Assembly: GCA_002269645.1 (NCBI GenBank)
Contig: NIVC01000486.1
Coordinates: 124,001-188,000, forward strand
Direction of reading: 5' to 3'
From: Macrostomum lignano
Lineage: Eukaryota
DNA length: 64,000 nt
Shown here: positions 1 through 50,828 of the stretch, piece after piece
Position numbering within the stretch: the first letter of the stretch is position 1
Layout: each line of letters starts with the position of its first letter
Notes under the pieces: generated by a model
Told to the model about the DNA's origin: nothing
Database searches by the model: none
What the model saw: only the letters and a program-made list of their open reading frames with translations
Translations under genes and position numbers: made by a program

Positions 1-1
1 T

Positions 2-538
2 ATTGCGGCTGAGCAAAACTATTTCTTCGACGTCGGAGCCTCCGAACCAGCTTCGACTCTAGAGACTGCAGAATTACGTTCGAGCACTTGCATAAATGAG
101 GCTCATGATGAAAGAGCCCGACTGCACGAGAAATGTGTTCGGGCGCTACAGCGCGCAGAAGTTGCCGTGCAGGTAAGAATTTATGCACGTATTGGTGGGA
201 GGGTTACTTAGTAGAGAAAATCGGGACTGTTAACTTCAGCATGTCTTTATTTATACCATCTGTAGGAATACCGCGAAGCAATGGATGAGCTCGAGACTTT
301 CGATCTTCGCAGTCAAGGCGAGTCAGTCTCTGTGTGCTGTACAGGCAGTTCTCTGTTTGCTAACTTCGACCCCGACGCTGACTCCAATAGCCGCTCGCCA
401 TCACCTGTCTTCAACAAGACTGTAAATGTCTGCTCGTACCGCGCTTACGTAGAGGGCCGGCACTGGTCGGAAGATGGAATGAATGGCCTTCTTGCCGCAG
501 CCGCGGAGGAAACTGAGGGAACAATATATTCGATGTAG
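2..538 (+). CDS. 3' exons of an unidentified spliced gene (exons <2-172 and 266-538), nested antisense in a TECPR1 intron
   Basis: Open frame from base 2 to CAG|GTAAG at 172/173; acceptor ctgtag|GAA at 265/266 continues in frame into ORF 281-538. No family recognised. Confidence 0.5.
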
Positions 539-922
539 CCCGTTTCTCCTTACAATTATATCCAGAATATATGTACCTGAAAATGGGATTCTGCAAATCC
601 TGAAAATTAGTGATAACTAATTTCCCCCCGTCCCCATCGATCGCGGATCAGCATTGAAATCGGTTAAAGCATTTAACACACATTTCCACAGCTTCTATAT
701 ATTTGTCCATGTACTGGCGGTATAACCGCGATGAACAATGTCATTGATCGGCGAATAATAAAATATAATTCCTCAAGCTTCCACTTTCTGCACTTTCCGT
801 TCCTCTTTTTATTTGCTTCATTTCTTAGTGGCTAAATGATGAATAGTATGAGCTACTTAGAAAGTATTTTGCTAATTACATATAGGATTCCTCGAAACAC
901 CTTCATTTGCACGTGCAGCGCA

Positions 923-3191
923 ATGACGTCCAAAGCTTCTGGCAAGGCATCCGTGAAGACAGCTACGTCGGAATCGTCTACAGAAAAAAGAAAGCGCAAG
1001 GCTTCCAACCATTGTCAGCAGCCTGCTAAACCACACAGCAAGAAGCCATCCAAGAAAAGTAAGTCGCATTCCTGCGACTCGGTTGCAGCGCCTCGAGGTT
1101 CGAAACAGTTGAATCCAACTGCTGTCTCGGCGCCTCCAACTGCTGTCTCGGCGCCTCCTGCTGCTGTCTCGGCGCCTCCTACTGCTGTCTCGGCGCCTCC
1201 TGCTTCTGTCTCGGCGCCTCCTACTGCTGTCTCGGCGCCTCCTGCTTCTGTCTCGGCGCCTCCTGCTGCTGTCTCGGCGCCTCCTGCTGCTGTCTCGGCG
1301 CCTCCTGCTGCTGTCTCGGCGCCTCCTGCTGCTGTCTCGGCGCCGCTAGCTGCTATATGGGCGCTTCCAACGGCTGTCTCGGCGCCTTCAACTGCTGCAG
1401 CCCCGACTGAAATTGCAGTGTCGCTCGAGGCTGAAAACGCTGATAACGATCAGGAAATTGGTGAAATGCAGGGCTACAAAATGGAGGACAAAGAGCGTTT
1501 TTTGTGTTTCAATACAAACACTTTCACATGCGTACAGAGGTTGTCTCCACATCAAGTAGTACTGCGCCGCTCATTGTGTCTCGTCGACGTGGAGTGATTG
1601 GGCGAATCGCGATTGGCGAAGAAGTCCTGATCGTAACCGCAAAAACAAATCGCCAGAAGGCTAAGCGCTGGTTTGGCACCTTAATCAAGGGGCCATTCCA
1701 GAGGAAGGCCGAGGCTACCGGCGAGGCGGCCATGACAAACGTTCATGCCACACCAGTTGACCTGCCTAGAGCGTGCGCCTCATGCCACAGCCTTCTCATA
1801 GAGCTTCAGCGGAGCTCGAGCCTAGTAGAAACACTGCGTGAGAATCGTTCCCGTATATAACTACCAGTATACTCGCATAAATCGTGATCGCAAAGATGTT
1901 ACATATTGCCTCGGTAATAATGCGAATGCGCTTTTTCACAATTATATTGCACAGGTACTGAACTCCGCAAGAAGGCGTCATTGGAGCAGACTTTCAACAG
2001 CCAACTGGACGCCCTAAAGGAGCGAAATAAAGTACTGACGAAGATGGAGTCGTCACTTCTCCGCGAACTCCAAGCAGAGCAGCGGCGCGCTGCCGCACTG
2101 GAGCACAGAGCGACGCAGTGCAACGCCTTACTTACGCAAGCCTCGACCATGCTCTGTGGCAATGTGTCGGCAGCGACAGTCGTCCTATCCGACGAACATT
2201 CAGAGGAAGAAGCCGTCCACACCGAGCAGCGTCAGGATAGCGAGGCAGACTTTGCAGTACAAGTCGACACGTGCTTGTCAGCTGCACAGACACGTGCATT
2301 GCTCAATGTGTGTGCGAAAAGCTCCGCAGCGGGTGAAGCGGCGTCTTCCGACTCCTCTTTGAAAGTGCCGCTGTCGGAAAAGCAGCCGTACGTCCTTGTC
2401 AAACCAAAAAGAAAAATGGAGCTGCAGACGAGCTTGCAGAATTGGAAGGATGTTGTCGCCAAGACGAGTGCCGAGTTGGTCCAAACGGAGGGGCACATGG
2501 AGATGCGCAGCACTGCACGTCTGACAGTGATACGCAGCCTTCTTCGATGCCTGTTTAGCGACGCGGAGTTTACTAACAGCTCCATCTCCGGTCGCAAGTC
2601 ACGGGGCCGTGTCTGCCTGGCAGCCAATCCGGCGAAGATTGCCACCGCGGAACTGTGGCTGTCAGCTGAAGGCGTTGACTACAGTCCGCGCGATTTTAAG
2701 CGGTCGTTTAACAGGTGCGAAGATAAATATATGAATGCTGCTTCTATAGCTTTATATTAAAGGCGCTCGTATAAAGCTATAGAAGCAGCGCTTAGCACCT
2801 TACCTTAGCGCTAAGGTGCAGCTAGGTTTTAACTATACATTCCAGGTGCACTGAGACGGCTCGGAAGCGCGCCGGACAATCGGTCAGTACGACAGTAGCA
2901 AGCAGTGGACGGCGTGCTGCGGCAGCTGTAGGCAATAAAAAGCCGATACGCAAGCGCGGCGCGAAGGTAGCTGCGAAGACGACATCAACATCGGCAGCAA
3001 GCTCCTCAGCTTCAGTGGTACTCCGTGTTATCACTGAAGGCGAGGCGGATGAGGCGGAGTCGCACGCCTTGCCTATTTCCTCGATGACGACATCTGCCAA
3101 TCAAATCGTTTCAGATGTCAGTCACCTCATGGGCGACAAGCATGCTGAACGTGCTGAACAGGACATGCTGAACGTCTTGCTCGATTCGTAA
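923..3191 (+). CDS. BEN-domain protein with N-terminal Ala/Pro repeat and coiled coil (exons 923-1460, 1538-1837 or -1852, 1955-2714, 2846-3191)
   Basis: GT-AG junctions join ORFs 836.., 1504.. and 1981.. in consistent phase. The last exon (g TGC ACT GAG...TAA 3191) is open. RSLLRCLFSDAEFTNSSISG...NPAKIAT...FKRSFNRCTETARKR resembles the BEN domain pattern by eye. Confidence 0.65.
1117..1400 (+). repeat. Coding 21-bp minisatellite encoding (P[TA]AVSAP)n
   Basis: About 13 copies of ctgctgtctcggcgcctcc(t/a)n inside the BEN gene exon 1. Confidence 0.9.
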
Positions 3192-4163
3192 ACTGCAGTT
3201 AGTGTGGTACAAGGATCGTAACATTTTGGTTGTAGGATTCTAGGATTTCTGGTTCTTTAATCGGTTCTTAGGAAAAAGGAAAATTTTTTGATTAAAGTCA
3301 GGATTGAAGCGGCTCTCCTTTCGGGCCGGGGACCGCTTGGCTCACCTATCCTATAATTTTTCATTTATCTTTTTTTCTCGTTTTTTTTCTGTTAAAAACC
3401 GCAATTTGCAGTTTTCTGATTCGGAGGTTTTTTGGTACTACGCACGGCAATTTCGGAGACAAAATTCGAACGTAATTATGATATGATCACACTCGAATGA
3501 GTGATATACAGTTTGCTTTGATCGAAGAGGTATGGCCTCTGATATACAATGAGCAACTTTTACAGTTCCACTAAACATGTAATGGACTGTATTAGCAATA
3601 GGCTAATATTAGCAACATCATGGGAAGCTATGTGTAGTACCCTTTTTCCTCCGGGTTCGATCTTTCCAACTTGATTCCCTGTTATGTCGATCAAACCCAT
3701 ATATAAGTATTGCCTAAATTTATATATACATATTTTAAAGTGATGTGTTCACTTTAAATTTCAATTTTAAAACAACGTTTTGCAAACTTAAAAGTCAACC
3801 ATTTCGAGGCCGCCTTCCAAAACTACACTTGTAACACTTCTCTAGTACACTTCCTAAAGCAACGTTTTTGTGCTTTTTTGGTCATTTCGCAATTTGACAA
3901 TTTACCGCATTTGTCACTCACTAGCATTAAAATATAGACTATACGTCTATATTCTGTCCCTAAGTATAAGCATTTTTGCCGCTTGGCTTCAATTTAATAC
4001 AACATTTCTTATATACTCGGTGAATAAACTGAAATACAATTTACAGTGCCAGTCTGGATGTTAAGAATGACGTCAAGGATGACGTCCATTTTTGCTATTT
4101 TCACAAATTAATTGACACCATTGTGGCTACGCTATTATATTTGAGGCCTTTACTTACTTTTCT

Positions 4164-4330
4164 GTCCGCATTTCACCCGCTTTTAATCCGCCTGCTCGTT
4201 CGAATCGCCAAATGAAGCGATTTCGTCCGCATTTCACCCGATTTTAATCCGCCTGCTCGTCCGAATCGCCAAATGAAGCGATTTCGTCCGCATTTCACCC
4301 GCTTTTCATCCGCCTGCTCGTCCGATTTGT
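4164..4330. repeat. 62-bp tandem repeat (about 3 copies)
   Basis: gtccgcatttcacccg... starts at 4164, 4226 and 4288. Confidence 0.85.
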
Positions 4331-4670
4331 TTAGTCAGTGCTAAAGTGAAACGGACGAAGCATCGGCAGATAAACGGATCAAACACCGGACTAACAAGCG
4401 GACGAACGTCACGTGAGGTGAAGTTTTCGTCCGCTTTCGTAACTTTTCGTCCGCTTTGTCCGATTTTCCCTTATGGAAAAAATACATTATCAACCGGACG
4501 AACTATCGGATAAGTGAGCGGACGAAAGAACCGGACCAAAGTCCAGGCGGGAAATTTCCTTTTTGACAGACAATACTCTAGGTTGGGTAAACAGTGGGAG
4601 TAAATAATCTAGATTTTCATCAGCAAATGCCTCGTCATCTTCCTAGAAAGGTTTCTTAGAAAACATTTAC

Positions 4671-7600
4671 CTGCAAAGCGTGATAGCAATTCTCAGTGTA
4701 GACAGCCAGACAGGCTGGCCGATTTGACAGCTGAGCAACGCAGGTGACGGACTCCAACAGTATGCGCCGCTCGGCTCGCTGCGCTGCCGACTTGCCGCCG
4801 CCAGTCTGCTGCTGCTGCTGCCGACGGCGCGTAGCCGGGGTGAGCACCAGCTCGGCCTTGGCGCCGCCAGCCGATGCCACCAGTGCCAGCTGGGCCTCGC
4901 AGCCTCGGCCGGTCTCGTGATGCCAGTGCGTGACCTTCTCCGCTTTCCACAGGCCGGACTGTTTAAATGGGCAAGATTTGAATTGAACGCATTCAGCGGC
5001 TGACTAAATTGAGGACTGTCTAAAGAGAGTAAGGGCCGTATGCAGAAAGCTTAGTCCAGACTAGCTAGTCCGGACTTGGGTAGTTCAGTCTATAGTCTAT
5101 GGTCTAGCTACCCTAGTTCTGCTATAGTAGACCGGTCTAACTTTGTGTTTCTGCATACCAAATCCAAGTCCAGACTAGCTTTTCAAGACCGGACTACCCT
5201 AGACAGAGCTTTCTGCATACGGCCCTAGAAGTACTGACTCTCAACAGCTCAACAGTCAATACATTTAAGCGCCTATCTTAGCAGGGCCGCTGTACACTTT
5301 GGGCCGTATGCAGAAAGCTTAGTCCAGACTAGCTAGTCCGGACTTGGGTAGTTCAGTCTATAGTCTATGGTCCAGCTACCCTAGTTCTGTCTATAGTAGA
5401 CCGGTCTAACTTTTGTGTTTCTGCATACCAAATCCAAGTCCAGACCACAGATTCTATAAACACTAGATGGCTCACTCAGCGAAAAATCTTGCTCCCAAAC
5501 AGATCGTCTATGGTTGGAATCGCTATTTTTAGCCCTAGTGTTAAACGCAGGCTTTTAATGTGTTCTATACTCTTCTACTTTGTTCTATTCTTCTAGCTAT
5601 GGAAGTGAAAGCGAGGCATTTACCTCAAAATTGCCGAACTTTTTGCCATAACGTTTGATAGAAAAATCGAAAATGTCTCAAATTTCACACTGTCATTTGT
5701 TTAGATAAAAGTAGCATACTGTGAAAAGCTGACGTCAATAGGACCTGCTTGTCACACGTTATACCACAATTATCGGCACTTTAAAACAAAGGCATATCGT
5801 AAAGAAGTCTCTCAAAGTGCCGATAATTGTCGCATAAATTCTGATTGGAAAATCCTACTGCCTTCAGATTTTCACAACCTGGTGCCATCATTTGTGGAGG
5901 TGGCTGGGTAAAACTGGAAGCCTCCGAATTTGTTGAATCAAAATTTATAGCCGTTCCACTTCAGCCAAGAGCCTGGTTCATGTCGCATGGCAGCTGGGCA
6001 AGAGTACGCCTCTTCCACAAAATGATCGCTGCACACTTTTAAGTCTCTGCGTCGAACTTCCTCGAGCGGGAACGGCAGCTCCAGAACCTGCATCCATCGC
6101 GTAGCGGTTGCCGTATCTTGAGGAAATCGGTGCAGCTTGATAGGGGTGTTTTGAGGCGGAGAGGTAACTGCCTTATTTTTGCAGCCTGCAGCACAGCAGA
6201 TTTTTTAGTTCATTACCAGAAGCTTGTTGGTCTTCGCCTTCGGTGTTCAGTGTCAAATATATAATTCTATCTAGTTGTTGCAGGAGAAAGAACTGGGTGT
6301 GCTAGAATCAGTGAGAGAAAAGTTTTGTTGCTGGCTCAATGCTAGTTATAAGCTAGCTGCTGGCGCGGGGGGGGGGGGGCGAAGTCTCGCGAGCGAGGGA
6401 TTCCAACCATAGACAGTGAGAATTTGGCCTCCACTGAAGGAATGGAGAGTGAGCCATCTAGTGTTTATAGAATCTGTGGTCCAGACTAGCTTTTCAAGAC
6501 CGGACTACCCTAGACAGAGCTTTCTGCATACGACCCCCTGTGTGAGCGTGTATATAAGCAGCCGAAGGCGCAGCGATAGGGTGCCAAAGGCCCTCTTTGA
6601 GTGTTACTATAATTAGCTCGTAGCTTTCTACGACTTCTAAGGGGGAAGTTGTAGCCCAGTGGCTAGAGCGTCGGACGACTTGAAGGTCAGGGGTTCGATT
6701 CCTGATCCCACTGGAACAATGTGTTCTTGAGCAAGACACTTAACTCTGCATCGCTTCAGTTCATTAGCTGGGGGGGGGGTGACTGAGGCTGTGTGCGGCG
6801 ACCCCCTAAGTCCTTGGACTGAACAGCCGTACGCAGCTCAAAAATAGGACAATTTCAAACCAAGTCTAAAGCCTTTAGGGAGGATTAGCCAACAGCTTTC
6901 GGTTGTATCTATCATCGATAATAATTTTTATCTACTTAGTAAGTAGTACAAAATAAAAAATTAAGACTGAATTGAAAGGTAGAAATCTTAGAAAACAACT
7001 GTAATAACCGCTGTGTCACAACAGACAAATTGAAAATGAATGTTACATCTACTCTCTTAATTAGTACAATTAGGATATATTACTTATACTTAGGCATCAT
7101 ACACTTAACGTAAAAAATATAACTAATAAATGCTTTAAAGAAGTATATGTTAGCAATGCATAAATATAGTGGAGAATTGCATACGTATAATTATAAATAT
7201 TGATGCATATTTATATGTGTTCAGCAGTCGATCTCATTGCCATAAGTGAGCCAATTTGATAACCAAAAATTTTATTAACATTGGCAGCAACTTCCAACAG
7301 TTACCAAAATGCCACAACAGATTTATAACAGAACTTCCTGTTTAGCAAACTTCATATCAGCACAGACATGCTGCTAGCACAGCTAAGTCCACCTGTTGGC
7401 CTTTAATACTTACTTGAATTTCGGCTGGCAATTAAACAGCAACACAACTTTTGCAACATGTACTTTTAGTTATTCAAAATAGCTATATGCATATCCATTA
7501 GCAGGGCTCCTAGAGAAGAAAAAAGATAAAGTTTTTTAAATCTTTGAATTTCTACTAATAGTAGAATAATTTGAATCGAAAAATTCAAAATCGAAATGAC

Positions 7601-10600
7601 GACAAAGTTTATCACGACTGCCCATCTAATCCAAACACCGGCACCTGCCGCAAACAGAGGAGAAACACCTATCTGAGACCACTGAGTTAAAATTCCGTTT
7701 TAGAGTATATAACTAGCCATAGCAACGAATCCCATTGACATAACAAGGCACTCAATTAGCAAAGCATTGATAAAACTTTATACAGGGTGAACATTTAAAC
7801 TTGCCATGTCCGGCTGTCATATCAAGACATTCTGAGACTCGAACTCAATAGATTGATTCCACGAGCAGCCTGGCATATTCATATGTTTTGGGCTTGTGCT
7901 GTGCTTGCATCATTCACGCAACTGTGATTACGACTATAATCCCAAGGACTCGGGGTCAGCGGTTTGAGCATAGATGCTTAAAAGACGTATAGAGGAGTAG
8001 AGGGAGGAAAACAAGAGTAAGAGGGGAGTATAGGGAGGAACCGAGGGTAGAGGGGAGTAGAGGGAGGAACCGAGGGTAGAGGGGAGTAGAGGGAGGAACC
8101 GAGGGTAGAGGGGAGTAGAGGGAGGAAAAAAGAGGTTAGAGGGGAGTAGAGGGAAGAAAAATAGGGTAGAGGGGAGTAGAGTGAGGAATGAAGGAAGGTA
8201 GAGGGGAGTAGAGGGAGGAATCAAGGAGGGAGGAGGGGAGTAGAGGGAGGAAAAAAGAGGTTAGAGGGGAGTAGAGGGAGGAAATACATGCAAAGGACAA
8301 GAGAGGGGCTACAGAGAACTGAGTGAATAACGCAGCACAGACAGGCAGCCTCACCTCCTCCTTCGCAACGCTGCCGAAGTGAGCAAAACGGGGGCTCTTG
8401 TACTCGCGATTGTCCCGCTGCACCAGCTGGTACAGCACTGCGGACTCGAGAGCCGACAGGTCCAGCTGGGAGTCGCAGCTGCAGCCGCCGCCACGCCGCC
8501 TGGCCGGATGCCAGAGCGTTGAGATCGCGCCGCCAAGCAGCGGCAGAGCGGAGGCGGACAAATCCATCACGGCCAGAAGCAGCGGAGCTTCATAGGCGGC
8601 GCACTTCTCAACGCCGCCGCCTACAACAGTTGCAGCAGCGAGAGAGGCGGGCATCATCGGCAAGGGCGGCGGATCGACAAACTGGATGAAGCCGGTCATC
8701 TGGCGGCTTAGCCGGGCCTCATCGGACTCGGCACTCTCTTCGCCTGCCTCTTCTTCTTCGTGTTGACCTTTTTCGTCCGCTTCCTCGGCGGCTACGCCAA
8801 GTTCTACACTGTCTGCCGCCGAGGATGCTGCGAAAGCGCCGGAACCGGAAGCGGCAGCTGCTGAGGCGCTGAGACTGAGAACTGCGCCGCTAGAGGAAGA
8901 CTCTGCAGGATTGAATGGCGTGTAAATGCTCGACTAAATAAAACACTTCTCAAAGTGAAATAGGCATAAAATAAGTCTAATCTAGCTAAATTAGGCACTA
9001 AATAGACATTAAATTAGGTTTTTATACCCTAAAAAACTCTGTAGATGTTTGACTACACTCTAGAAAAGAAAGAGTACAGACTCAAAAAGGCAGCCAGAAT
9101 AGACTTAGGAAGGTTTAAGTAGGCTGTAGCCTAGTGGCCAGAGCGTCGGACTCACGACTGAAAGGTCGGGGGTTCGATTCTCGACCCACTCGGAACAATT
9201 TGTGTCCTTGAGCAAGATCATTAACTCAGAATTGCTTCAGTTTACTCAGCAATAAAATTGGTGCCAGCAGCCTATTAAGACAGTTGTACTCGTAATTAAT
9301 TATTATTATTATAAGTCTCCTGAGTAGGCCCAAACTTTTAATAAGGATTTTGAGTAGGCCCTAGCCCATAGTAACAAGGTTTCTGAGTCAGACTTTACTC
9401 CTCAATTAATAAGGCTTCTGATGAGTAGACTCCGATGAGTCGTTCTGAGCAGATGAGCAGACTCAGCAGATTGACTTACCCAAATTAGCGGCCGACATCG
9501 ACGACGTAGAGGCGGTGGCAGCGATGACGGCCTCCGACATGCGCCGCAGGTAGCGCCGCACGCAGTCCGGATAGCCGATTGGCAGGCAGAGCCGCTCCCA
9601 GGTTTTGCCAACCAGCAGCTCTTTGCGCGACTCGATGCCGGTCCGGTAGAGCAGCTGATTGCTCACCAGGTCGATGCCCCACACCTGCGGCGGCGGCGAC
9701 AGCGGTGGTTATGAAGAAGACCATAAGCTTAATCTAAACTAAATTTAGTAACCGCCATTATTGTAACGTTTATCATAAAAAGTAGACACTTTCATATCAC
9801 TCTACTAATAGTAAAAATGTTCGAAGATTATTTGTAAAAAGTAGTACAGGGACATGTGTTCGACAGGCTACTCATTCTCATTCTCATTGGATGAGCCAGA
9901 TTGGGCCTGCCGCCCTAGGCTGAGTTTCGTCCGTCTGACTTTCACCTCTATCCTTACTGCTCTCTTATTGGCTGAACCAAATTGGGCCTGCCCCCTAGGC
10001 TGAGTTTCGTCCGTCTGACTTTCACCTCTATCCTTACTGCTCTCTTATTGGCTGAACCAAATTGGGCCTGAACCTAGGCTGAGTTTCGTCCGTCTGATTT
10101 TCACCTCTATCCTTACTGCTCTCTCATTGGCTGAGCCAGATTGGGCCTGCCCCCCTAGGCTGAGTTTCGTCAGTCTTGCGCTCACTTGTGTACATCCAGT
10201 TAAATGCTTGTTGTTCATCCTTAACTCCATATGCTACTGAGGCCGCCAACCCCGAGGAAGGAAAGGAAGTTTTAGCTGCCACATTAAATCTAAGTGACAC
10301 TGCCCAGATAATTACTGAGTAGACTACCTAACTAGTTAGTCCTAATTAGTCCTAAGACCTAATTAAGACTAATTAGGTCTTATTAGGTCTTATTAGGTCT
10401 TATTAGGTCCTAAGACCTAATAAAGACCTAATTAGTCCAGCAGTTCTTGAGATCTTGAGATTTTGAAGTTCAGTTTTGAAAAATTTACGAAAACAAGTGA
10501 CATTTTTAAATAGCAAAATTTCGACATCTTTTCGGCAGCAGTGCCAATCCACGCACCTGATCTGTAGGACTAACGCTGACCTGCCTGAACAGGCCAATCA

Positions 10601-13600
10601 TCTCCACCCAGCTGTGGCCGGCCTGCAGAGCTGACTGGTCGGACGAGAAATTGACACCACGCCTGAACCAAATTCGGCCAGTGTTGGTCACCGCCCACAT
10701 CGATCTGACACCGTGGCTCACCTGGGCAGGAAGCGGGGAGTGCCGATTAGCACAGCGCTCTGAGCTGCATTATCTCCTACGAATTTACCCTCTATCCTAT
10801 GAATTTACCCTCTATCCTACGAATTTACCCTCTATCCTACAAATTTACCCTCTATCCTACGAATTTACCCTCTATCCTACGAATTCACCCTCTATCCTAC
10901 GAATTTACCCACTCTATTATGAATTTACCCTGTATCCAACGAATTTACCCTCTATCCTATGAATCTAGCCTGTTTTCCTTACATGTAGGAATCAATAAGT
11001 CATAAATTTCTCTCACTGAGCTCACTGACCTGCAAAATCCGCTCCCTGGTAGACAGATTCTTAGGCGGCTGCACGCACATCCAGTCGGCTCCGGTGACGC
11101 ACTGCCAGGTGATGCCAGTTCTCACGTACACTCCGCCAGTGTCAGTCACTGTCAGCACTGAGCCTAGCGGGCCAACCGATACGCCAGTCACCTGCTCCGT
11201 GTTGCTTGGCGGGCTGACAAGCCACCAGGACAGGCCTTCGGGGCACAGCCTGTCAACGCCTGATAAGCGACGATGGAAGATGGAGATGAAGGGCGATTCT
11301 TGGAGAAGATGGAGGGCGATTCTTGGAGACTCTGGCAGGAGATTCTTAGAGAATCTGGCAGGAGATTCTTAGAGAATCTGGAGCGCGATTCTTAGAGAAT
11401 CTGGAGGGAGATTCTTGGAGAATCGGGAGGGCGACTTTTGGAGATTCTGGCGGGAGATTCTTAGAGAATCTGGAGGGAGATTCTTAGAGAATCTGGAGGG
11501 AGATTCTTAGAGAATCTGGAGGGCGATTCTTGGAGAATCTGGAGGGAGATTCTTGGAGAATCTGGCAGGAGATTCTTGGAGAATCTGGCAGGAGATTCTT
11601 GGAGAATCTGGAGGGAGATTCTTGGAGAATCTGGAGGGAGATTTTTTGAGAATCTGGCGGGAGATTCTTAGAGAATCTGGAGGGCGATTCTTGGAGAATC
11701 TGGAGGGCGACTTTTGGAGATTCTGGCGGGAGATTCTTAGAGAAGCCGCAGGGCGATATGCGATGGCTCACCAGTCCGATAGACCAACTGCCCCTTGACG
11801 GTGACCGCCCACAGAGCCAAATAGCCGTCGTTTTGGTGCGGCATCCACTGGCCGCCGACGCTGACCTCGCGAAACGGATCGTCCGTGGGGAACTGCGACG
11901 ATGGCGCCGGGATGAGCAGCCACCGGTCTGTCGCTGAGAAATACCTTCATGGCCAGGTGATGGATAATAAGGGAGGCTGGCTATGGGACTAAATTCTGAA
12001 AAATAGGTGCCCATTCCTACCTATGCCGCAGCCAGCGCCGCTTTCGCACAAAAGCGATTCGTTTTTCAGGCGCGAACGCTTTATTAAAGTCCAGCGCGTA
12101 CTGCCAGCCCAGCTTGTCGGTGGCCGGGCCGGCCTCTTCCAGGTGCCAGTCGTCTTCCCAGGTCCAGCGGGACGATGGAGGCCGGACTGAGCGAAGAGAC
12201 ACGGGCTTGTAGTAGGCGCTCTGCCTCACCTGCGGTGGATTAAATGATGGATTATCATTTCCTTAGCGTTAAGATTTTCCAGAGAAAGATAATAGCATTT
12301 GTCAGGTGCAGTTTGTGAGCGATTCCCAGATGCAGTTTGTGAGCCATTCTCAGATGCAGTTTGTGAGAGATTCTCAGGTGCAGTTTGTGAGAGATTCTCA
12401 GATGCAGTTTGTGAGCGATTCCCAGATGCAGTTTGTGAGCCATTCTCAGGTGCTGTTTGTGAGCGATTCCCAGATGCAGTTTGTGAGAGATTCTCAGATG
12501 CAGTTTGTGAGAGATTCTCAGATGCAGTTTGTGAGAGATTCTCAGATGCACTTTGTGAGAGATTCTCAGATTCAGTTTGTGAGAGATTCTCAGATGCAGT
12601 TTGTGAGAGATTCTCAGATGCAGTTTGTGAGAGATTCTCAGATGCAGTTTGTGAGAGATTCTCAGATGCAGTTTGTGAGCGATTCTCAGATGCAGTTTGT
12701 GAGAGATTCTCAGATGCAGTTTGTGAGAGATTCTCAGATGCAGTTTGTGAGCCATTCTCAGGTGCAGTTTGTGAGCGATTCCCAGATGCAGTTTGTGAGC
12801 GATTCTCAGATGCAGTTTGTGAGAGATTCTCAGATGCAGTTTGTGAGAGATTCTCAGATGCAGTTTGTGAGAGATTCTCAGATGCAGTTTGTGAGAGATT
12901 CTCAGAGCCAGTTTGTGAGAGATTCTCAGATGCAGTTTGTGAGAGATTCTCAGATGCAGTTTGTGAGAGATTCTCAGATGCAGTTTGTGAGAGATTCTCA
13001 GATGCATTTTGTGAGAGATTCTCAGATGCAGTTTGTGAGCGATTCTCAGATGCAGTTTGTGAGAGATTCTCAGATGCAGTTTGTGAGAGATTCTCAGATG
13101 CAGTTTGTGAGAGATTCTCAGATGCAGTTTGTGAGCCATTCTCAGATGCTGTTTGTGAGAGATTCTCAGATGCAGTTTGTGAGAGATTCTCAGATGCAGT
13201 TTGTGAGAGATTCTCAGGTGCAGTTTGTGAGAGATTCCCAGATGCAGTTTGTGAGCGATTCTCAGATGCAGTTTGTGAGAGATTCTCAGATGCAGTTTGT
13301 GAGAGATTCCCAGATGCAGTTTGTGAGAGATTCCCAGATGCAGTTTGTGAGCGATTCTCAGATGCAGTTTGTGAGAGATTCTCAGATGCAGTTTGTGAGA
13401 GATTCTCAGAGCCAGTTTGTGAGAGATTCTCAGATGCACTTTGTGAGAGATTCTCAGATGCAGTTTGTGAGAGATTCTCAGATGCAGTTTGTGAGAGATT
13501 CTCAGATGCAGTTTGTGAGAGATTCTCAGATGCAGTTTGTGAGAGATTCTCAGATGCAGTTTGTGAGAGATTCTCAGATGCAGTTTGTGAGAGATTCCCA

Positions 13601-14329
13601 GATGCAGTTTGTGAGCGATTCTCAGATGCAGTTTGTGAGCGATTCTCAGATGCAGTTTGTGAGAGATTCTCAGATGCAGTTTGTGAGCGATTCTCAGATG
13701 CAGTTTGTGAGCGATTCTCAGATGCAGTTTGTGAGCGATTCTCAGATGCAGTTTGTGAGAGATTCTCAGATGCAGTTTGTGAGAGATTCTCAGATGCAGT
13801 TTGTGAGAGATTCTCAGATGCAGTTTGTGAGAGATTCTCAGATGCAGTTTGTGAGAGATTCTCAGATGCAGTTTGTGAGAGATTCTCAGATGCAGTTTGT
13901 GAGAGATTCTCAGATGCAGTTTGTGAGCGATTCTCAGATGCAGTTTGTGAGAGATTTTCAGAGCCAGTTTGTGAGAGATTCTCAGAGCCAGTTTGATGGG
14001 ACAGCACTTCCATTTACCTGCAGAGCAAAATGCGGCGGATCATTATTCAATAATTTGGCGCCAGAGAAGCCGCCAATAGGCGAATAGCGCTCGTGCTCAA
14101 CAACGGATTCCTGGTAGCGGATTTTCATATCGCTGCTCAGCACCATCAGGAAGAGCTGCTGGTCATTGCCGATGGCCCACAGGCACCAGCTGGCCGGGGC
14201 CAGGCGCTTGAAATGGCGCAGTTTCGACTGTCCGGAGCTGACGGGCTGCCATTCGCTGCTTGAAGAACTGATGCTGAACACCCGACCGGCCAGGTCAAGG
14301 GCGTATAGGCTGCCGCTGCCGCAGGCCAT
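4671..14329 (-). CDS. TECPR1: Tectonin beta-propeller repeat protein 1 (5' 8 exons: 14329-14018, 12229-12021, 11944-11772, 11259-11030, 10721-10557, 9684-9480, 8902-8355, 4958-4671); continues beyond window start
   Basis: Phase-consistent GT-AG exons encode TECPR repeats (LYALDLAGRVF, LWAVTVKGQLVYRTG, WAVTNTGRIWFRRG), a dysferlin domain (WTWEDDWH...GWQYALDF...VRKRRWLR) and the start of a PH-like domain. No stop is reached inside the window. Confidence 0.85.
5033..5225. mobile_element. 193-bp MITE, Harbinger/Tourist-like
   Basis: 19-bp perfect TIR GGGCCGTATGCAGAAAGCT; flanks TAA / TAG. Confidence 0.8.
5446..6478 (-). mobile_element. Non-autonomous P-element-like DNA transposon
   Basis: Perfect 32-bp TIR CACAGATTCTATAAACACTAGATGGCTCACTC; 8-bp TSD GTCCAGAC (5438-5445 and 6479-6486); internal THAP relic. 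Confidence 0.85.
5938..6213 (-). pseudogene. THAP zinc-finger (C2CH) relic
   Basis: MN*KICCAAGCKN...IKLHRFPQD...RW...LKVCSDHFVEEAY: THAP signature with an in-frame stop at codon 3. Not in the ORF track. Confidence 0.8.
6641..6770 (+). mobile_element. tRNA-derived SINE with CORE-like body
   Basis: A box TAGCCCAGTGG, B box GGTTCGATTCC, then gtgttcttgagcaagacacttaactctgcatcgcttcagt. Confidence 0.7.
8010..8290. repeat. ~29-bp purine-rich minisatellite in TECPR1 intron
   Basis: agagggaggaaccgagggtagaggggagt units. Confidence 0.85.
9118..9270 (+). mobile_element. tRNA-derived SINE, same family as 6641
   Basis: TAGCCTAGTGG...GGTTCGATTCTCGACCC...gtgtccttgagcaagatcattaac...cttcagtttactcagc. Confidence 0.75.
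9885..10300 (+). repeat. Interspersed element with ~80-bp internal tandem (4 copies) plus shared 3' flank
   Basis: Unit ttggctgagccagattgggcctgccccctaggctgagtttc...; same family at 23385 and 39160. Confidence 0.8.
10790..10960. repeat. 20-bp intronic minisatellite
   Basis: gaatttaccctctatcctac units. Confidence 0.9.
11290..11750. repeat. 23-bp intronic minisatellite
   Basis: ttcttggagaatctggagggaga units. Confidence 0.9.
12300..13995. repeat. 24-bp minisatellite (~70 copies) filling TECPR1 intron 1
   Basis: cagatgcagtttgtgagagattct units. Confidence 0.97.
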
Positions 14330-33096: not shown

Positions 33097-35677
33097 ATGG
33101 GCAGCAAATCGGCGATTGTCTGCCTTGGCGATGCGTTTTGCAATCTCTGTTCGAAAACTTTCTCTATCAAGCAGCACAGAATTACTGCGATTAATCAACA
33201 TGCTGATGGCAGCAAGCACAAACAACAGGCTAATATCAGCTCCAGGACCAAAGATTCAAGTGGTCATCCAATTAACATAAGAAATTTCTTCCCAATGCAT
33301 CAGCAACAGCAGCAGCAAGTTCAGCAACCAACCAATGCCGCCAATGAACAGCCAGTCAGAACGGAAGACTCTCGCGAAAAAGTTTCTGATGCAGCAATGG
33401 AAGCAAGTCTCCACTTCACAGCTGCGGTATCAAAAAAGGACTTCTCATTTCGAGCCATGGATGAGCTGTCAGAGCTCATGCCAGTCGCTTTCTCTGACAG
33501 TAAGATTGCAGAAAAGTTTACATGTGCTCGAACTAAAACTGCGTATCTGATTAACGAGTCTCTAGCGCTACACGCCAAAAAAGACATGGCGCACACATTG
33601 AGAGACTCATTCTTCTCAATTCTGCTTGACGAGAGCACTAAGGGCAATTGTTCATGGTTGGTGGTTGTGGCGCAAGTCTTCCACCAGCAGCGCAGAAAGG
33701 TGCAGTTGCTATTTTTAGGTGCCGAGGAGCTTGTCGCCGGTACCGCTGAAAATATGAAAAACATTGTAGATGAGCTCCTTCGTAAGGCCAACCTGCCTCT
33801 TGAGCGCGTAATTTCTGTAATGACTGATTCCTGCAATGCCATGAGAGGTAAGATCTAAAGCAACTAACCAATCACTTTTATTTGCCGTTTTCGGTGTTCT
33901 TTTATTTATAAATAGTCATATTTTAAACAAAAAACACTATGTATTTTTAGGGAGCAACAATGGACTCGTCACTCGACTAAAACGTGCAATGCCCCATCTT
34001 GCCGACGTTGGTGGATGCAGTTTGCATCACGTGCATAACAGTGTACAATACGCTGTTCGAGCTTTTGATGTGGGTGGCGAAGTGGAAGGCCTGATGGACG
34101 ATTTGTACAATTTTTTCTGATTTGAAGGCTGTCTTCACAATTTTAGAGAGTTGCAGCAAAGTATGGAGGATGCCGAACATGTTTTCCTGCGACGCGTTGA
34201 AACACGATGGATTCAAATCCTCCAAGTAGTGAGACGCCTTCTGGAGCAGTGGAAGGTACTAATTGAGTATTTTGGCAAGGCTACGCCTGACTTCTTGCAA
34301 AACGTAAGAGCATGGTGAATCAAGCAGGCCCTGAACAACAATGTGCTTGCTCACCATACATGCGCAACCTTGGGAATCACCCGGCTGTTTCTATTAGCAA
34401 CACACACATGTAAGTCGCTATTGGCTGAGAGCAGTCACGTGACTACTATTCTGTCCAATAGCGACTTACATGTGTGTGTTGCCAATAGAAACGGCCGGGT
34501 GAATCCCAAGGTTGCGCCCAAGCATGTTGCTCGCCTACAATTCCTAGAGCAAGTCTTGCCGCATTGCGACAAGTTTGAGAAGATGTTTCAGCTTGAGTCG
34601 ACCCAAGTCCATCATCTTGCTGCAAGTCTTGATGAACTTCTCAGCGATATTTTGCTGAGCTTTCTTTGCGGCGAGGTGGTGCAGGACTGCTTAACTATTG
34701 GCAAGATTGCCGAAAAGGCCAAGGACTGGGCAAATCAAGTTGCGAATAAAGAGTTGGTAATCGGAAATAATACACGCAAGACACTGACTACGTTAACCGA
34801 AATGAACAAGCTAAGCTTTTTTGTGGCTGCTCGAAAGTTTTACGTCAAGTTGACCAGTCGTCTTGTTTCCTATTTGCCACTGCACAACAAACTGCTTTGT
34901 GCTCTGCAGTTTGTCGATCCTAAGTATTTGCTGTCAGTGTCTGAGGAATTTAACATCGACACAAGCGTTTTGCGCATTGCTAGGGCCCTCACGACAGTGG
35001 TTCCTACTGAACGACTTGACGATCTTCGTTTGGAGGTAGCAAAGCTTCGCGCCTGCTGCCCTGATGACTTTAATGTATCTGCAGACATGACACCCGAAGA
35101 ATTCTTGGCCACTTTGTCCACCGACATCTTTCCACATCTAACGGCGCTTGGTTGCGCTGCTTGCTACATCCCTCACGGAAATGCAGACAGCGAGCGCGTC
35201 ATCAAGTGGATTGGCACGCTTCTTACGAAGCAAAGGAATAAACTGTCTGATTTTACACTCGACTCGCTTCTGGCTATCAAAGTGTGGCTTAAGGCCAACA
35301 GCTGGCGATCATCAACAGTTGCGATTGGGCCAGCCCTCGTAGCTGACGGCTTCGAAGCTAAAGCAAAGGCCAATGCACAAGCTCGTGCAAAAAGAAACGA
35401 AGCAGCAATGGCACAAATCCAAGAGCAGTTCGATTCTATGCGGCATGCCCAGGCTGAACGTGAAAAGGCTGACAAGGAGGAGCGAGAGCGGCAAAGGAAT
35501 GCGGAACAGGTGCAGGCTGAGCAGCGCGAAATTGATGAGGCGCATAGAAAAGCCCGGGAAATCCTTCTGGAAGCAGAAAAGTCCGAGGCTCAGCTTCGCA
35601 AGTGGATGAGTTCCAGCAGCAACAGCAAGACCGGCGGCAGTGGCTTAAATGCACCCACTCCCAAAAAGCGCAAGTAG
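33097..35677 (+). pseudogene. hAT transposase (exons 33097-33847 and 33951-35677) with two premature TGA stops and a MITE insertion
   Basis: Zn finger FCNLC...H..GSKH, LLDEST, MTDSCNAMRG, CSLH, ETRW, dimerisation motif PHGNADSER, terminal PKKRK. Confidence 0.88.
34355..34526. mobile_element. 172-bp hairpin MITE inside the hAT transposase
   Basis: CATAC...GCATG ends, long internal inverted repeats, TSD TTGCTCAC/TTGCTCGC. Confidence 0.85.

Positions 35678-38731: not shown

Positions 38732-50828
<12,097 letters not shown>

Follow-up and report, generated by a model that had tools for sequence, protein, structure and literature searches.

A probable transposon end with a predicted BEN-fold gene beside TECPR1 exons of Macrostomum lignano

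Genes and repeats in the left part of the window

The window analysed here is a 64-kb stretch of Macrostomum lignano DNA. Its left part holds the minus-strand exons of TECPR1 and, antisense to them at 1‒4551 (+), what is very likely the right end of a large transposon that is bounded by terminal inverted repeats (TIRs) and has two or more genes, located 120 bp past the 5′ splice site of the PH-region exon of TECPR1. The element is cut by the window edge and was delimited by a layout common to four loci. It comprises the 3′ end of one gene (gene A), a second gene with a predicted BEN fold (gene B), and a repeat-rich terminus.

The TECPR1 exons (14329‒4672, minus strand) encode the N-terminal half of the protein, including TECPR repeats, a dysferlin domain, and a PH region, and match two M. 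lignano UniProt entries, A0A1I8G4J4 (P0001) and A0A1I8FW69 (P0010). The last recognisable exon (4672‒4958, minus strand; PH-domain region, ...AVYTENCYHALQ) was identified by its match to the C-termini of both entries, which terminate at exactly this exon. P0010 is identical to the window TECPR1 across the exons, with its C-terminal ...CYHALQ falling at the donor CAG|GTAAAT at 4671, and the C-terminus of P0001 is near-identical to the exon. An earlier note on this DNA had TECPR1 running up to a GT donor at 4671 without a stop codon, and the exon indeed reads ...CYHALQ|gtaaat. The 120 bp read between the transposon end and this 5′ splice site (GT 4671‒4670) are probably TECPR1 intron sequence (4552‒4671, minus strand). 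Since the three minus-strand frames gave no Pfam match at E ≤ 1, 1‒4671 is taken to be free of TECPR and dysferlin exons, as the earlier note had read 1‒4670 with respect to TECPR and second dysferlin exons. In A0A1I8FW69, the upstream gene with an MMADHC domain (Pfam E 2e-52; 17023‒18333, minus strand) is fused to TECPR1; in the window the two are separate neighbours, as TECPR1 begins with an ATG of its own at 14329.

The common end of the two UniProt models can also be read as the true end, or a split, of TECPR1 at 4672, in which case a truncated N-terminal half would face an intergenic transposon tail to tail, and the element would not be intronic. The models come from two near-identical loci, no M. 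lignano TECPR1 protein of greater length came up in the homology search, and the window has no downstream TECPR1 exon, all of which would fit such an end. However, a good donor closes the exon in phase, reading through it adds only VNVF before a stop, and no AATAAA is seen in the approximately 110 nt read downstream of the donor. Models without a stop codon are moreover typical where repeats break assemblies or annotations, and introns of TECPR1 are commonly multi-kb and filled with repeats. A genuine end at 4672 thus appears unlikely. With the upstream exon and its donor in view and the host exon on the other side not within 1‒4671, we infer that the element lies within a TECPR1 intron and that the remaining TECPR1 exons are located outside the window, beyond its left edge. 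Both public M. lignano TECPR1 models end exactly where the element begins, and the element, or the repeat-rich intron around it, probably truncates the annotation of this conserved autophagy gene.

Gene A is represented by its 3′ end only, with open frames at 2‒173 and 265‒538 (+) joined across a 91-nt GT..AG intron and closed by a TAG at 536‒538. It has no Pfam match and no homologue in the word-indexed homology search. Gene A was also considered as the 3′ end of a transposase by comparison with the 863-residue open reading frame (ORF863) of a related element described below; this was rejected, as the best local alignment scores 38 and 104 of 500 shuffles equal or exceed it.

Gene B (923‒3191, +), the conserved second gene of the family, is supported by its gene model, by homologues P0002‒P0009, and by tblastn matches to three related loci (L001, L002, and L003). 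It can be written as four GT-AG exons (923‒1460, 1538‒1837, 1955‒2714, and 2846‒3191) encoding 647 amino acids, in which a K/S-rich N-terminus is followed by AVSAPPx repeats, an N-module, a long coiled coil, and the BEN-fold domain. The AVSAPP(A/T) low-complexity tract is encoded by 12.8 copies of a 21-bp tandem repeat (1119‒1387, +) that is not in the homologues. The word-indexed search found no relative of gene B; eight, in M. lignano and on other eukaryotic contigs, emerged only when 1.84 billion representative proteins were searched exhaustively with HMMER. Four of them (P0002, P0006, P0007, and P0009) match the N-module, about residues 180‒280, and four match the C-module: P0003 at about residues 470‒575, and P0004, P0005, and P0008 at about 320‒545. 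In M. lignano, P0003 corresponds to PAA73791.1 and P0005 to a fused model of 3,935 amino acids.

The N-module (1498‒1837, +) is a conserved block ending in ...LPR(A/S)C(A/P)SC...(D/E)TLR, defined by homology and modelled with a predicted local distance difference test score (pLDDT) of only about 50‒66. Intron 2 (1838‒1954) follows ...TLR, a position kept in L002 and L003. From nt 1498, the frame 1 translation is homologous to P0002 and P0007 (FFVFQYKHFHMRTEVV vs YFIFKYANYHEKTEVV), and the homology goes on in frame 2 to about 1525 (YKMEDKERF vs YKIEQVKRY). Since this homology crosses into 1461‒1537 in two frames, the 77-nt GT-AG "intron" there is probably fortuitous and would cut out conserved coding sequence. 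The T6 run at 1498‒1503 (+) is the probable site of a 1-nt frameshift, either a true mutation or a T lost during homopolymer assembly. Programmed −1 frameshifting at U UUU UUG (1498‒1504) was considered as well; because no downstream structure accompanies this site (z = +1.35), mutation or assembly error is the likelier explanation. Intron 3 (2715‒2845, +) is a hairpin-rich insert of 131 nt with a perfect 20-nt inverted repeat (2737‒2756 / 2770‒2789), and the sequence reads a 7-bp direct repeat, CAGGTGC, at its borders, which supplies AG|GT. It is missing from the paralogue in L001 and from L002, and its removal yields FNRCTETARKR, which aligns with RC(G/R)ETA of the homologues. It resembles an insertion whose duplicated target provides the splice sites, in the fashion of introner elements. 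The frame of gene B is otherwise open over about 1.9 kb. Of the two intact-looking spliced plus-strand genes in the earlier note, gene B is thus present with a probable frameshift, and gene A is only a 3′ fragment.

The subterminal repeat region and right terminus occupy 4159‒4551, recognised by the motif array and the terminal pattern. A 61-bp tandem repeat spans 4159‒4325 (TRF), its third copy extending to 4346 when aligned, and ten CGTCCG cores in both orientations lie at 4224‒4519. The window contains 16 exact matches to TTCGTCCG, compared with 0.53 expected, and eight of them, again in both orientations, fall inside the 305 bp of 4222‒4526. Downstream of gene B, TTCGTCCG(C/G) motifs of either orientation form an array of 400 bp. 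The last 34 nt (4518‒4551, GCGGACGAAAGAACCGGACCAAAGTCCAGGCGGG) resemble a TIR and finish in CCAGGCGGG (4543‒4551). The TTCGTCCG motif also occurs at a spacing of about 80 bp at 9871‒10327, an 80-bp tandem repeat read directly, and at 39296‒39463. Kinship of these repeats with the array was rejected, as BLAST of 3192‒4670 against the rest of the window found no similarity.

The predicted fold of the gene B C-module

The BEN-fold domain of gene B lies at about residues 430‒542 (2404‒2873, +), is split by intron 3, and was recognised by structure prediction and Foldseek. In an AlphaFold2 model of the non-repetitive 485 amino acids, pLDDT exceeds 90 across the C-module. When this whole-protein model was searched against the PDB, ranks 1‒8 were all BEN domains, from Bsg25A/Elba1 (4x0g), Insv (4ix7), BANP (7yug, 7yuk, 8htx, and 8yzt), and BEND6 (7yun). 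A model of the domain alone, with a pLDDT of 82.5 and a predicted TM score (pTM) of 0.76, likewise found BEN domains in its top nine PDB matches, among them 4x0g, 4ix7, 7yun, 7yul, 7yug, 7yuk, and NACC1 (8yzs). These nine have Foldseek probabilities of 0.97‒1.0, with TM scores of about 0.5 on the query (TMq) and up to 0.64 on the target (TMt). TM scores on target length are 0.57‒0.64 in the top five, and the best four superpose with a root mean square deviation of 2.1‒2.8 Å over 78‒86 columns. A viral structure library likewise gave a BEN protein, from a bracovirus, as the best match.

Sequence comparison gives a different result. The Pfam BEN profile (PF10523) has no match to gene B at E ≤ 1 and none to its homologues at E ≤ 0.1, a profile of the C-module has no match to PDB sequences at E ≤ 10, and the Foldseek E-values of the BEN matches are modest (0.015‒0.3). 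Since the sequence profiles fail and these E-values are modest, we label the C-module "BEN-fold": by its model it is a BEN-fold domain and not a member of Pfam BEN. The earlier description of a low-complexity, coiled-coil, BEN-like protein thus holds for the repeat, the coiled coil, and the fold, and the proposed check by the Pfam BEN model came out negative.

Related elements and the transposon family

In four loci, the window and the related L001, L002, and L124, the same elements follow in one order: the two-module or BEN gene, 0.5‒1 kb of sequence, the TTCGTCCG array, and a terminus CAG(G/C)CGGG. Across their motif sites, T precedes the CGTCCG core in 36 of 37, giving the consensus tTTCGTCCG(G/C)wwwt. 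The family ends read 5′-CCCG(C)CTG..., as CCCGCCTGG in M. lignano, CCCGCTG in L002, and CCCGGCTG in L124. At each end, subterminal TTTCGTCCG(G/C) motifs of either orientation extend over several hundred bp.

Two of the relatives have TIRs on both sides. L002, on a Tara Oceans contig of 10,198 bp, is a complete 9.9-kb element from a marine metagenome, bounded by 33-nt TIRs (97‒129 / 10011‒10043, 97% complementary) and carrying a TTTCGTCCGG / CCGGACGAAA array at either end. Within the TIRs, the uninterrupted ORF863 is followed on the same strand by the two-module gene, of which P0007 and P0008 are neighbouring exons; the P0007 gene is present on 4 contigs. L001, from M. lignano, measures 2,113 bp, and its 22-nt TIRs (CCCGCCTGGCTTTTTCATCCGG; 9273‒9294 and 11364‒11385) are perfect. 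It encloses the BEN open reading frame PAA73791.1 alone, flanked by motif arrays, and lies within a (GTCT)n microsatellite, the repeat running on at either side. Lacking the transposase and the N-module, L001 reads as a deletion derivative of the transposon family. Approximately 100 bp upstream of it, an exon at 8746‒9165 resembles, by eye, part of a gene of the pyridoxal-phosphate serine/threonine dehydratase type, so this copy may be intronic too. L124, from another metagenome, provides the fourth right end, with a BEN exon, a motif array, and the terminus ...GCAGCCGGG.

The end of the window element corresponds to these relatives in detail. Its 4518‒4551 segment parallels the right TIR of L002 (CCGGACGAAAAACCGGACGATTTTTTCAGCGGG), and its terminal 9 nt (4543‒4551) are identical to both perfect TIRs of L001. 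The right TIR of L002 fits the pattern CGGACG-N5-6-CCGGAC-N7-8-CAGSSGG, as does a single site in the window (4519‒4550), where 0 are expected. Since the terminus and motif array agree with those of L001, L002, and L124, the boundary of the element is placed by sequence at 4551, 120 bp from the TECPR1 donor, and not at 4125 as in the earlier note. The proposal of that note that a large mobile element ends in this region is borne out by the array and terminus common to the three relatives, two of them bounded by TIRs. Its view of the BEN gene as cargo does not hold; because this gene adjoins the right end in all four elements, it is a core gene of the family. As judged from these loci, the family exists in multiple copies, four elements from at least three sources that include the internally deleted L001. 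Its members are present both in M. lignano and in metagenomic eukaryotes; the latter come from two metagenomes, at least one of them marine. When metagenomes were scanned with the terminal pattern, at least 120 matches were found, all of them chance matches on GC-rich contigs without homology to BEN or ORF863 and without motif clusters.

A reading without any mobile element takes genes A and B as resident, single-copy flatworm genes of a fast-evolving BEN-like chromatin family, nested antisense in a TECPR1 intron. The paralogues of gene B are diverged (only 30‒40% identical), as in an old gene family, one of them is annotated as a gene in GenBank, the 64-kb window contains no second copy of gene B, and Pfam scans of 1‒4671 found no transposase domain. 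Nevertheless, the same gene, motif array, and terminus recur at four loci, drawn from at least three sources. TIRs bound two of these loci at either side, in one case as perfect 22-nt repeats within a microsatellite, and a common non-coding terminal structure is not expected of host paralogues. We consider resident genes a highly improbable explanation.

The candidate transposase of the family is ORF863. Pattern reading, without a reference alignment, finds D285, D372, C391xxC394, H553xxxH557, and E656 in this order, and the order D, D, CxxC, HxxxH, E has been described for the CMC/Transib clade (PMC12730594). Residues 163‒289 of ORF863 are 43% identical (E 1e-25) to residues 3226‒3348 of M. 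lignano P0005, directly upstream of the BEN module of P0005, so the linkage of a transposase-like gene with a BEN gene exists in M. lignano too. The location inside the L002 TIRs, the motif order, and the linkage in P0005 point to a transposase-like protein. Since ORF863 has no Pfam, PHROG, or PDB sequence match, the term "transposase" is based on motifs and position. No ORF863 homologue was found in the window by tblastn. From the gene order of L002 and P0005, the transposase of the window copy would be located to the left of the window, and the left end would likewise lie beyond the edge.

BEN proteins are also known from poxviruses and polydnaviruses, and the best match to the gene B domain in a viral structure library is a bracovirus BEN protein, raising the possibility of an integrated viral or Polinton-like element that carries a BEN gene. 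However, neither 1‒4671 nor the complete L002 has a capsid, polymerase, integrase, or packaging-ATPase domain, IMG/VR contains no relative of ORF863, and the architecture is that of a TIR transposon. A viral origin of the element is therefore extremely improbable.

The age and activity of the window copy are a separate matter. Given the probable frameshift in its BEN gene, and unless the assembly dropped a T, this copy is probably non-autonomous or in decay. It could even be an immobile fossil, an old dead insertion whose BEN-like gene may have been exapted as a host gene if the frameshift is an assembly error. Such a state would agree with the probable N-module frameshift, with the 131-nt insert in the BEN domain region, and with the L001 paralogue, a deletion derivative that GenBank annotates as a gene. 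On the other hand, the terminus and array are well preserved, with the terminal 9 nt shared with L001 and ten motif cores, and the remaining frame of gene B is open. We regard a fossil as possible, with the balance leaning away from it; it is compatible with the transposon reading and differs from it in age and activity only.

Apart from the profile failures and modest E-values described above, several observations weigh against the transposon reading. The window copy shows one end only; a TIR pair, a target-site duplication, and a transposase are not seen there, and gene A fits no part of the transposon model. No target-site duplication is seen in L002 (AT vs CC), and the flanks of L001 share a 2-bp CT match within the (GTCT)n microsatellite, which is weak evidence. 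ORF863 lacks the database matches named above, binding of the BEN protein to the ends is only predicted, and the family termini CCCG(C)CTG are not the CACTA or CA..TG of CACTA/CMC elements. Set against the structure shared by the four loci, these points leave a TIR transposon at 1‒4551 very likely.

The remainder of the window contains further mobile and host sequences. An open reading frame with a THAP domain (Pfam THAP, E 5e-12) at 5941‒6204 (minus strand), within 5030‒6540, is located in the preceding TECPR1 intron. It lies inside a block bounded by inverted-repeat arms (5430‒5477 / 6447‒6494), around which copies of a unit resembling a miniature inverted-repeat transposable element, with ends GGGCCGTATGCAGAAAGC..., are found at 5032‒5226, 5301‒5445, and 6479‒6536. 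This block is probably the remnant of a second, unrelated DNA transposon. Two long open reading frames at 33097‒33858 and 34343‒35677 (+) look by eye like the halves of a putative hAT/ZMYM-type transposase (...SERVIKWIGTLLTKQRNKL), with no Pfam match at 1e-3. Long minisatellites occupy introns and intergenic DNA at 12258‒14013, 14399‒15255, 15681‒16705, 17363‒17826, 43361‒44295, 52476‒53044, and 55289‒57732; they stay open in several frames, and one unit type recurs at 15.7, 43.4, and 52.5 kb. Host genes include a bromodomain plus DUF3512 gene of BRD7/9-like type (19951‒22911, minus strand), a Rab-type GTPase (24768‒25832, minus strand), the C-terminal part of an AGC kinase (49358‒49828, +), and a SKI/SNO gene with a Smad4-binding domain (57754‒58896, minus strand).

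Comparison with known systems

In the mechanism we propose for the family, the large open reading frame of the ORF863 type would act as a DDE cut-and-paste transposase. The BEN protein is a predicted sequence-specific end-binding factor that would recognise the subterminal TTTCGTCCG repeats, by analogy with better-known transposons, and may assemble or regulate the transposition complex. In En/Spm, TnpA binds the subterminal repeats, and in Harbinger a Myb-like protein plays the end-binding role.

The closest parallel in layout is provided by En/Spm (CACTA) and the CMC/Transib elements, which likewise have TIRs and several hundred bp of short direct and inverted subterminal repeats at both ends. 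Subterminal repeat arrays are typical of CACTA elements. As proposed for the BEN-gene family, a large transposase gene in En/Spm precedes another that encodes a DNA-binding protein (TnpD plus TnpA), and ORF863, as read by pattern, has its residues in the order described for the CMC/Transib clade. In contrast, Pfam matches ORF863 to neither Transposase_21 nor DUF4218 nor related models, a BEN fold unrelated to TnpA is predicted for the accessory protein, and the hosts of the BEN-gene family are animals or marine eukaryotes. The subterminal array in both orientations that characterises CMC elements is present, and the family ends do not follow the CMC terminus 5′-CAC(TA)...GTG-3′ (PMC4079192, PMC12730594). 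Because the termini are not of the CMC type and a target-site duplication is not established, we do not place the family in a superfamily.

PIF/Harbinger elements have the same two-gene logic, with a catalytic protein and a separate protein that is needed at the ends and binds DNA in a sequence-specific manner. They differ in that the BEN-gene family shows no Pfam match of the DDE_Tnp_4 type, has a BEN fold instead of Myb/SANT, and reads no TWA 3-bp duplication at its flanks. The position of the window copy recalls antisense intronic insertions and nested genes, as an element with its own genes lies antisense, 120 bp from a donor; unlike in these cases, the other side of the intron is located beyond the window, and nesting is the likely arrangement.

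In insulator proteins, repressor proteins, and some DNA viruses, BEN domains bind DNA at specific sequences. The predicted fold of gene B superposes with the solved BEN proteins, Drosophila Insv and Elba1/Bsg25A and human BANP, BEND6, and NACC1, all of which bind DNA in a sequence-specific manner. It differs from them in sequence, with an identity of only 11‒22% in the domain, and in being encoded by a transposon together with a family-specific N-module and a long coiled coil.

Full-text searches, with Repbase outside their scope, returned no paper that connects BEN domains with DNA transposons or with M. lignano, and none that describes a two-component TIR transposon whose accessory protein has a BEN fold. 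We tentatively suggest, as a possibility rather than the expectation, that the family is an undescribed lineage of eukaryotic transposons, present in flatworms and metagenomes, whose second protein recognises the TTTCGTCCG(G/C) subterminal repeats through its BEN domain. As the end motifs are conserved between a flatworm and unrelated metagenome eukaryotes, the BEN domain and TTTCGTCCG(G/C) form a candidate protein-DNA pair. The family would then be a candidate source of BEN transcription factors through domestication, and the animal BEN transcription factors as well as the BEN genes of polydnaviruses and poxviruses could descend from such elements. BEN would thereby join the THAP, Myb/SANT (HARBI1/NAIF1), and CGGBP1-type domains as a DNA-binding module of transposons.

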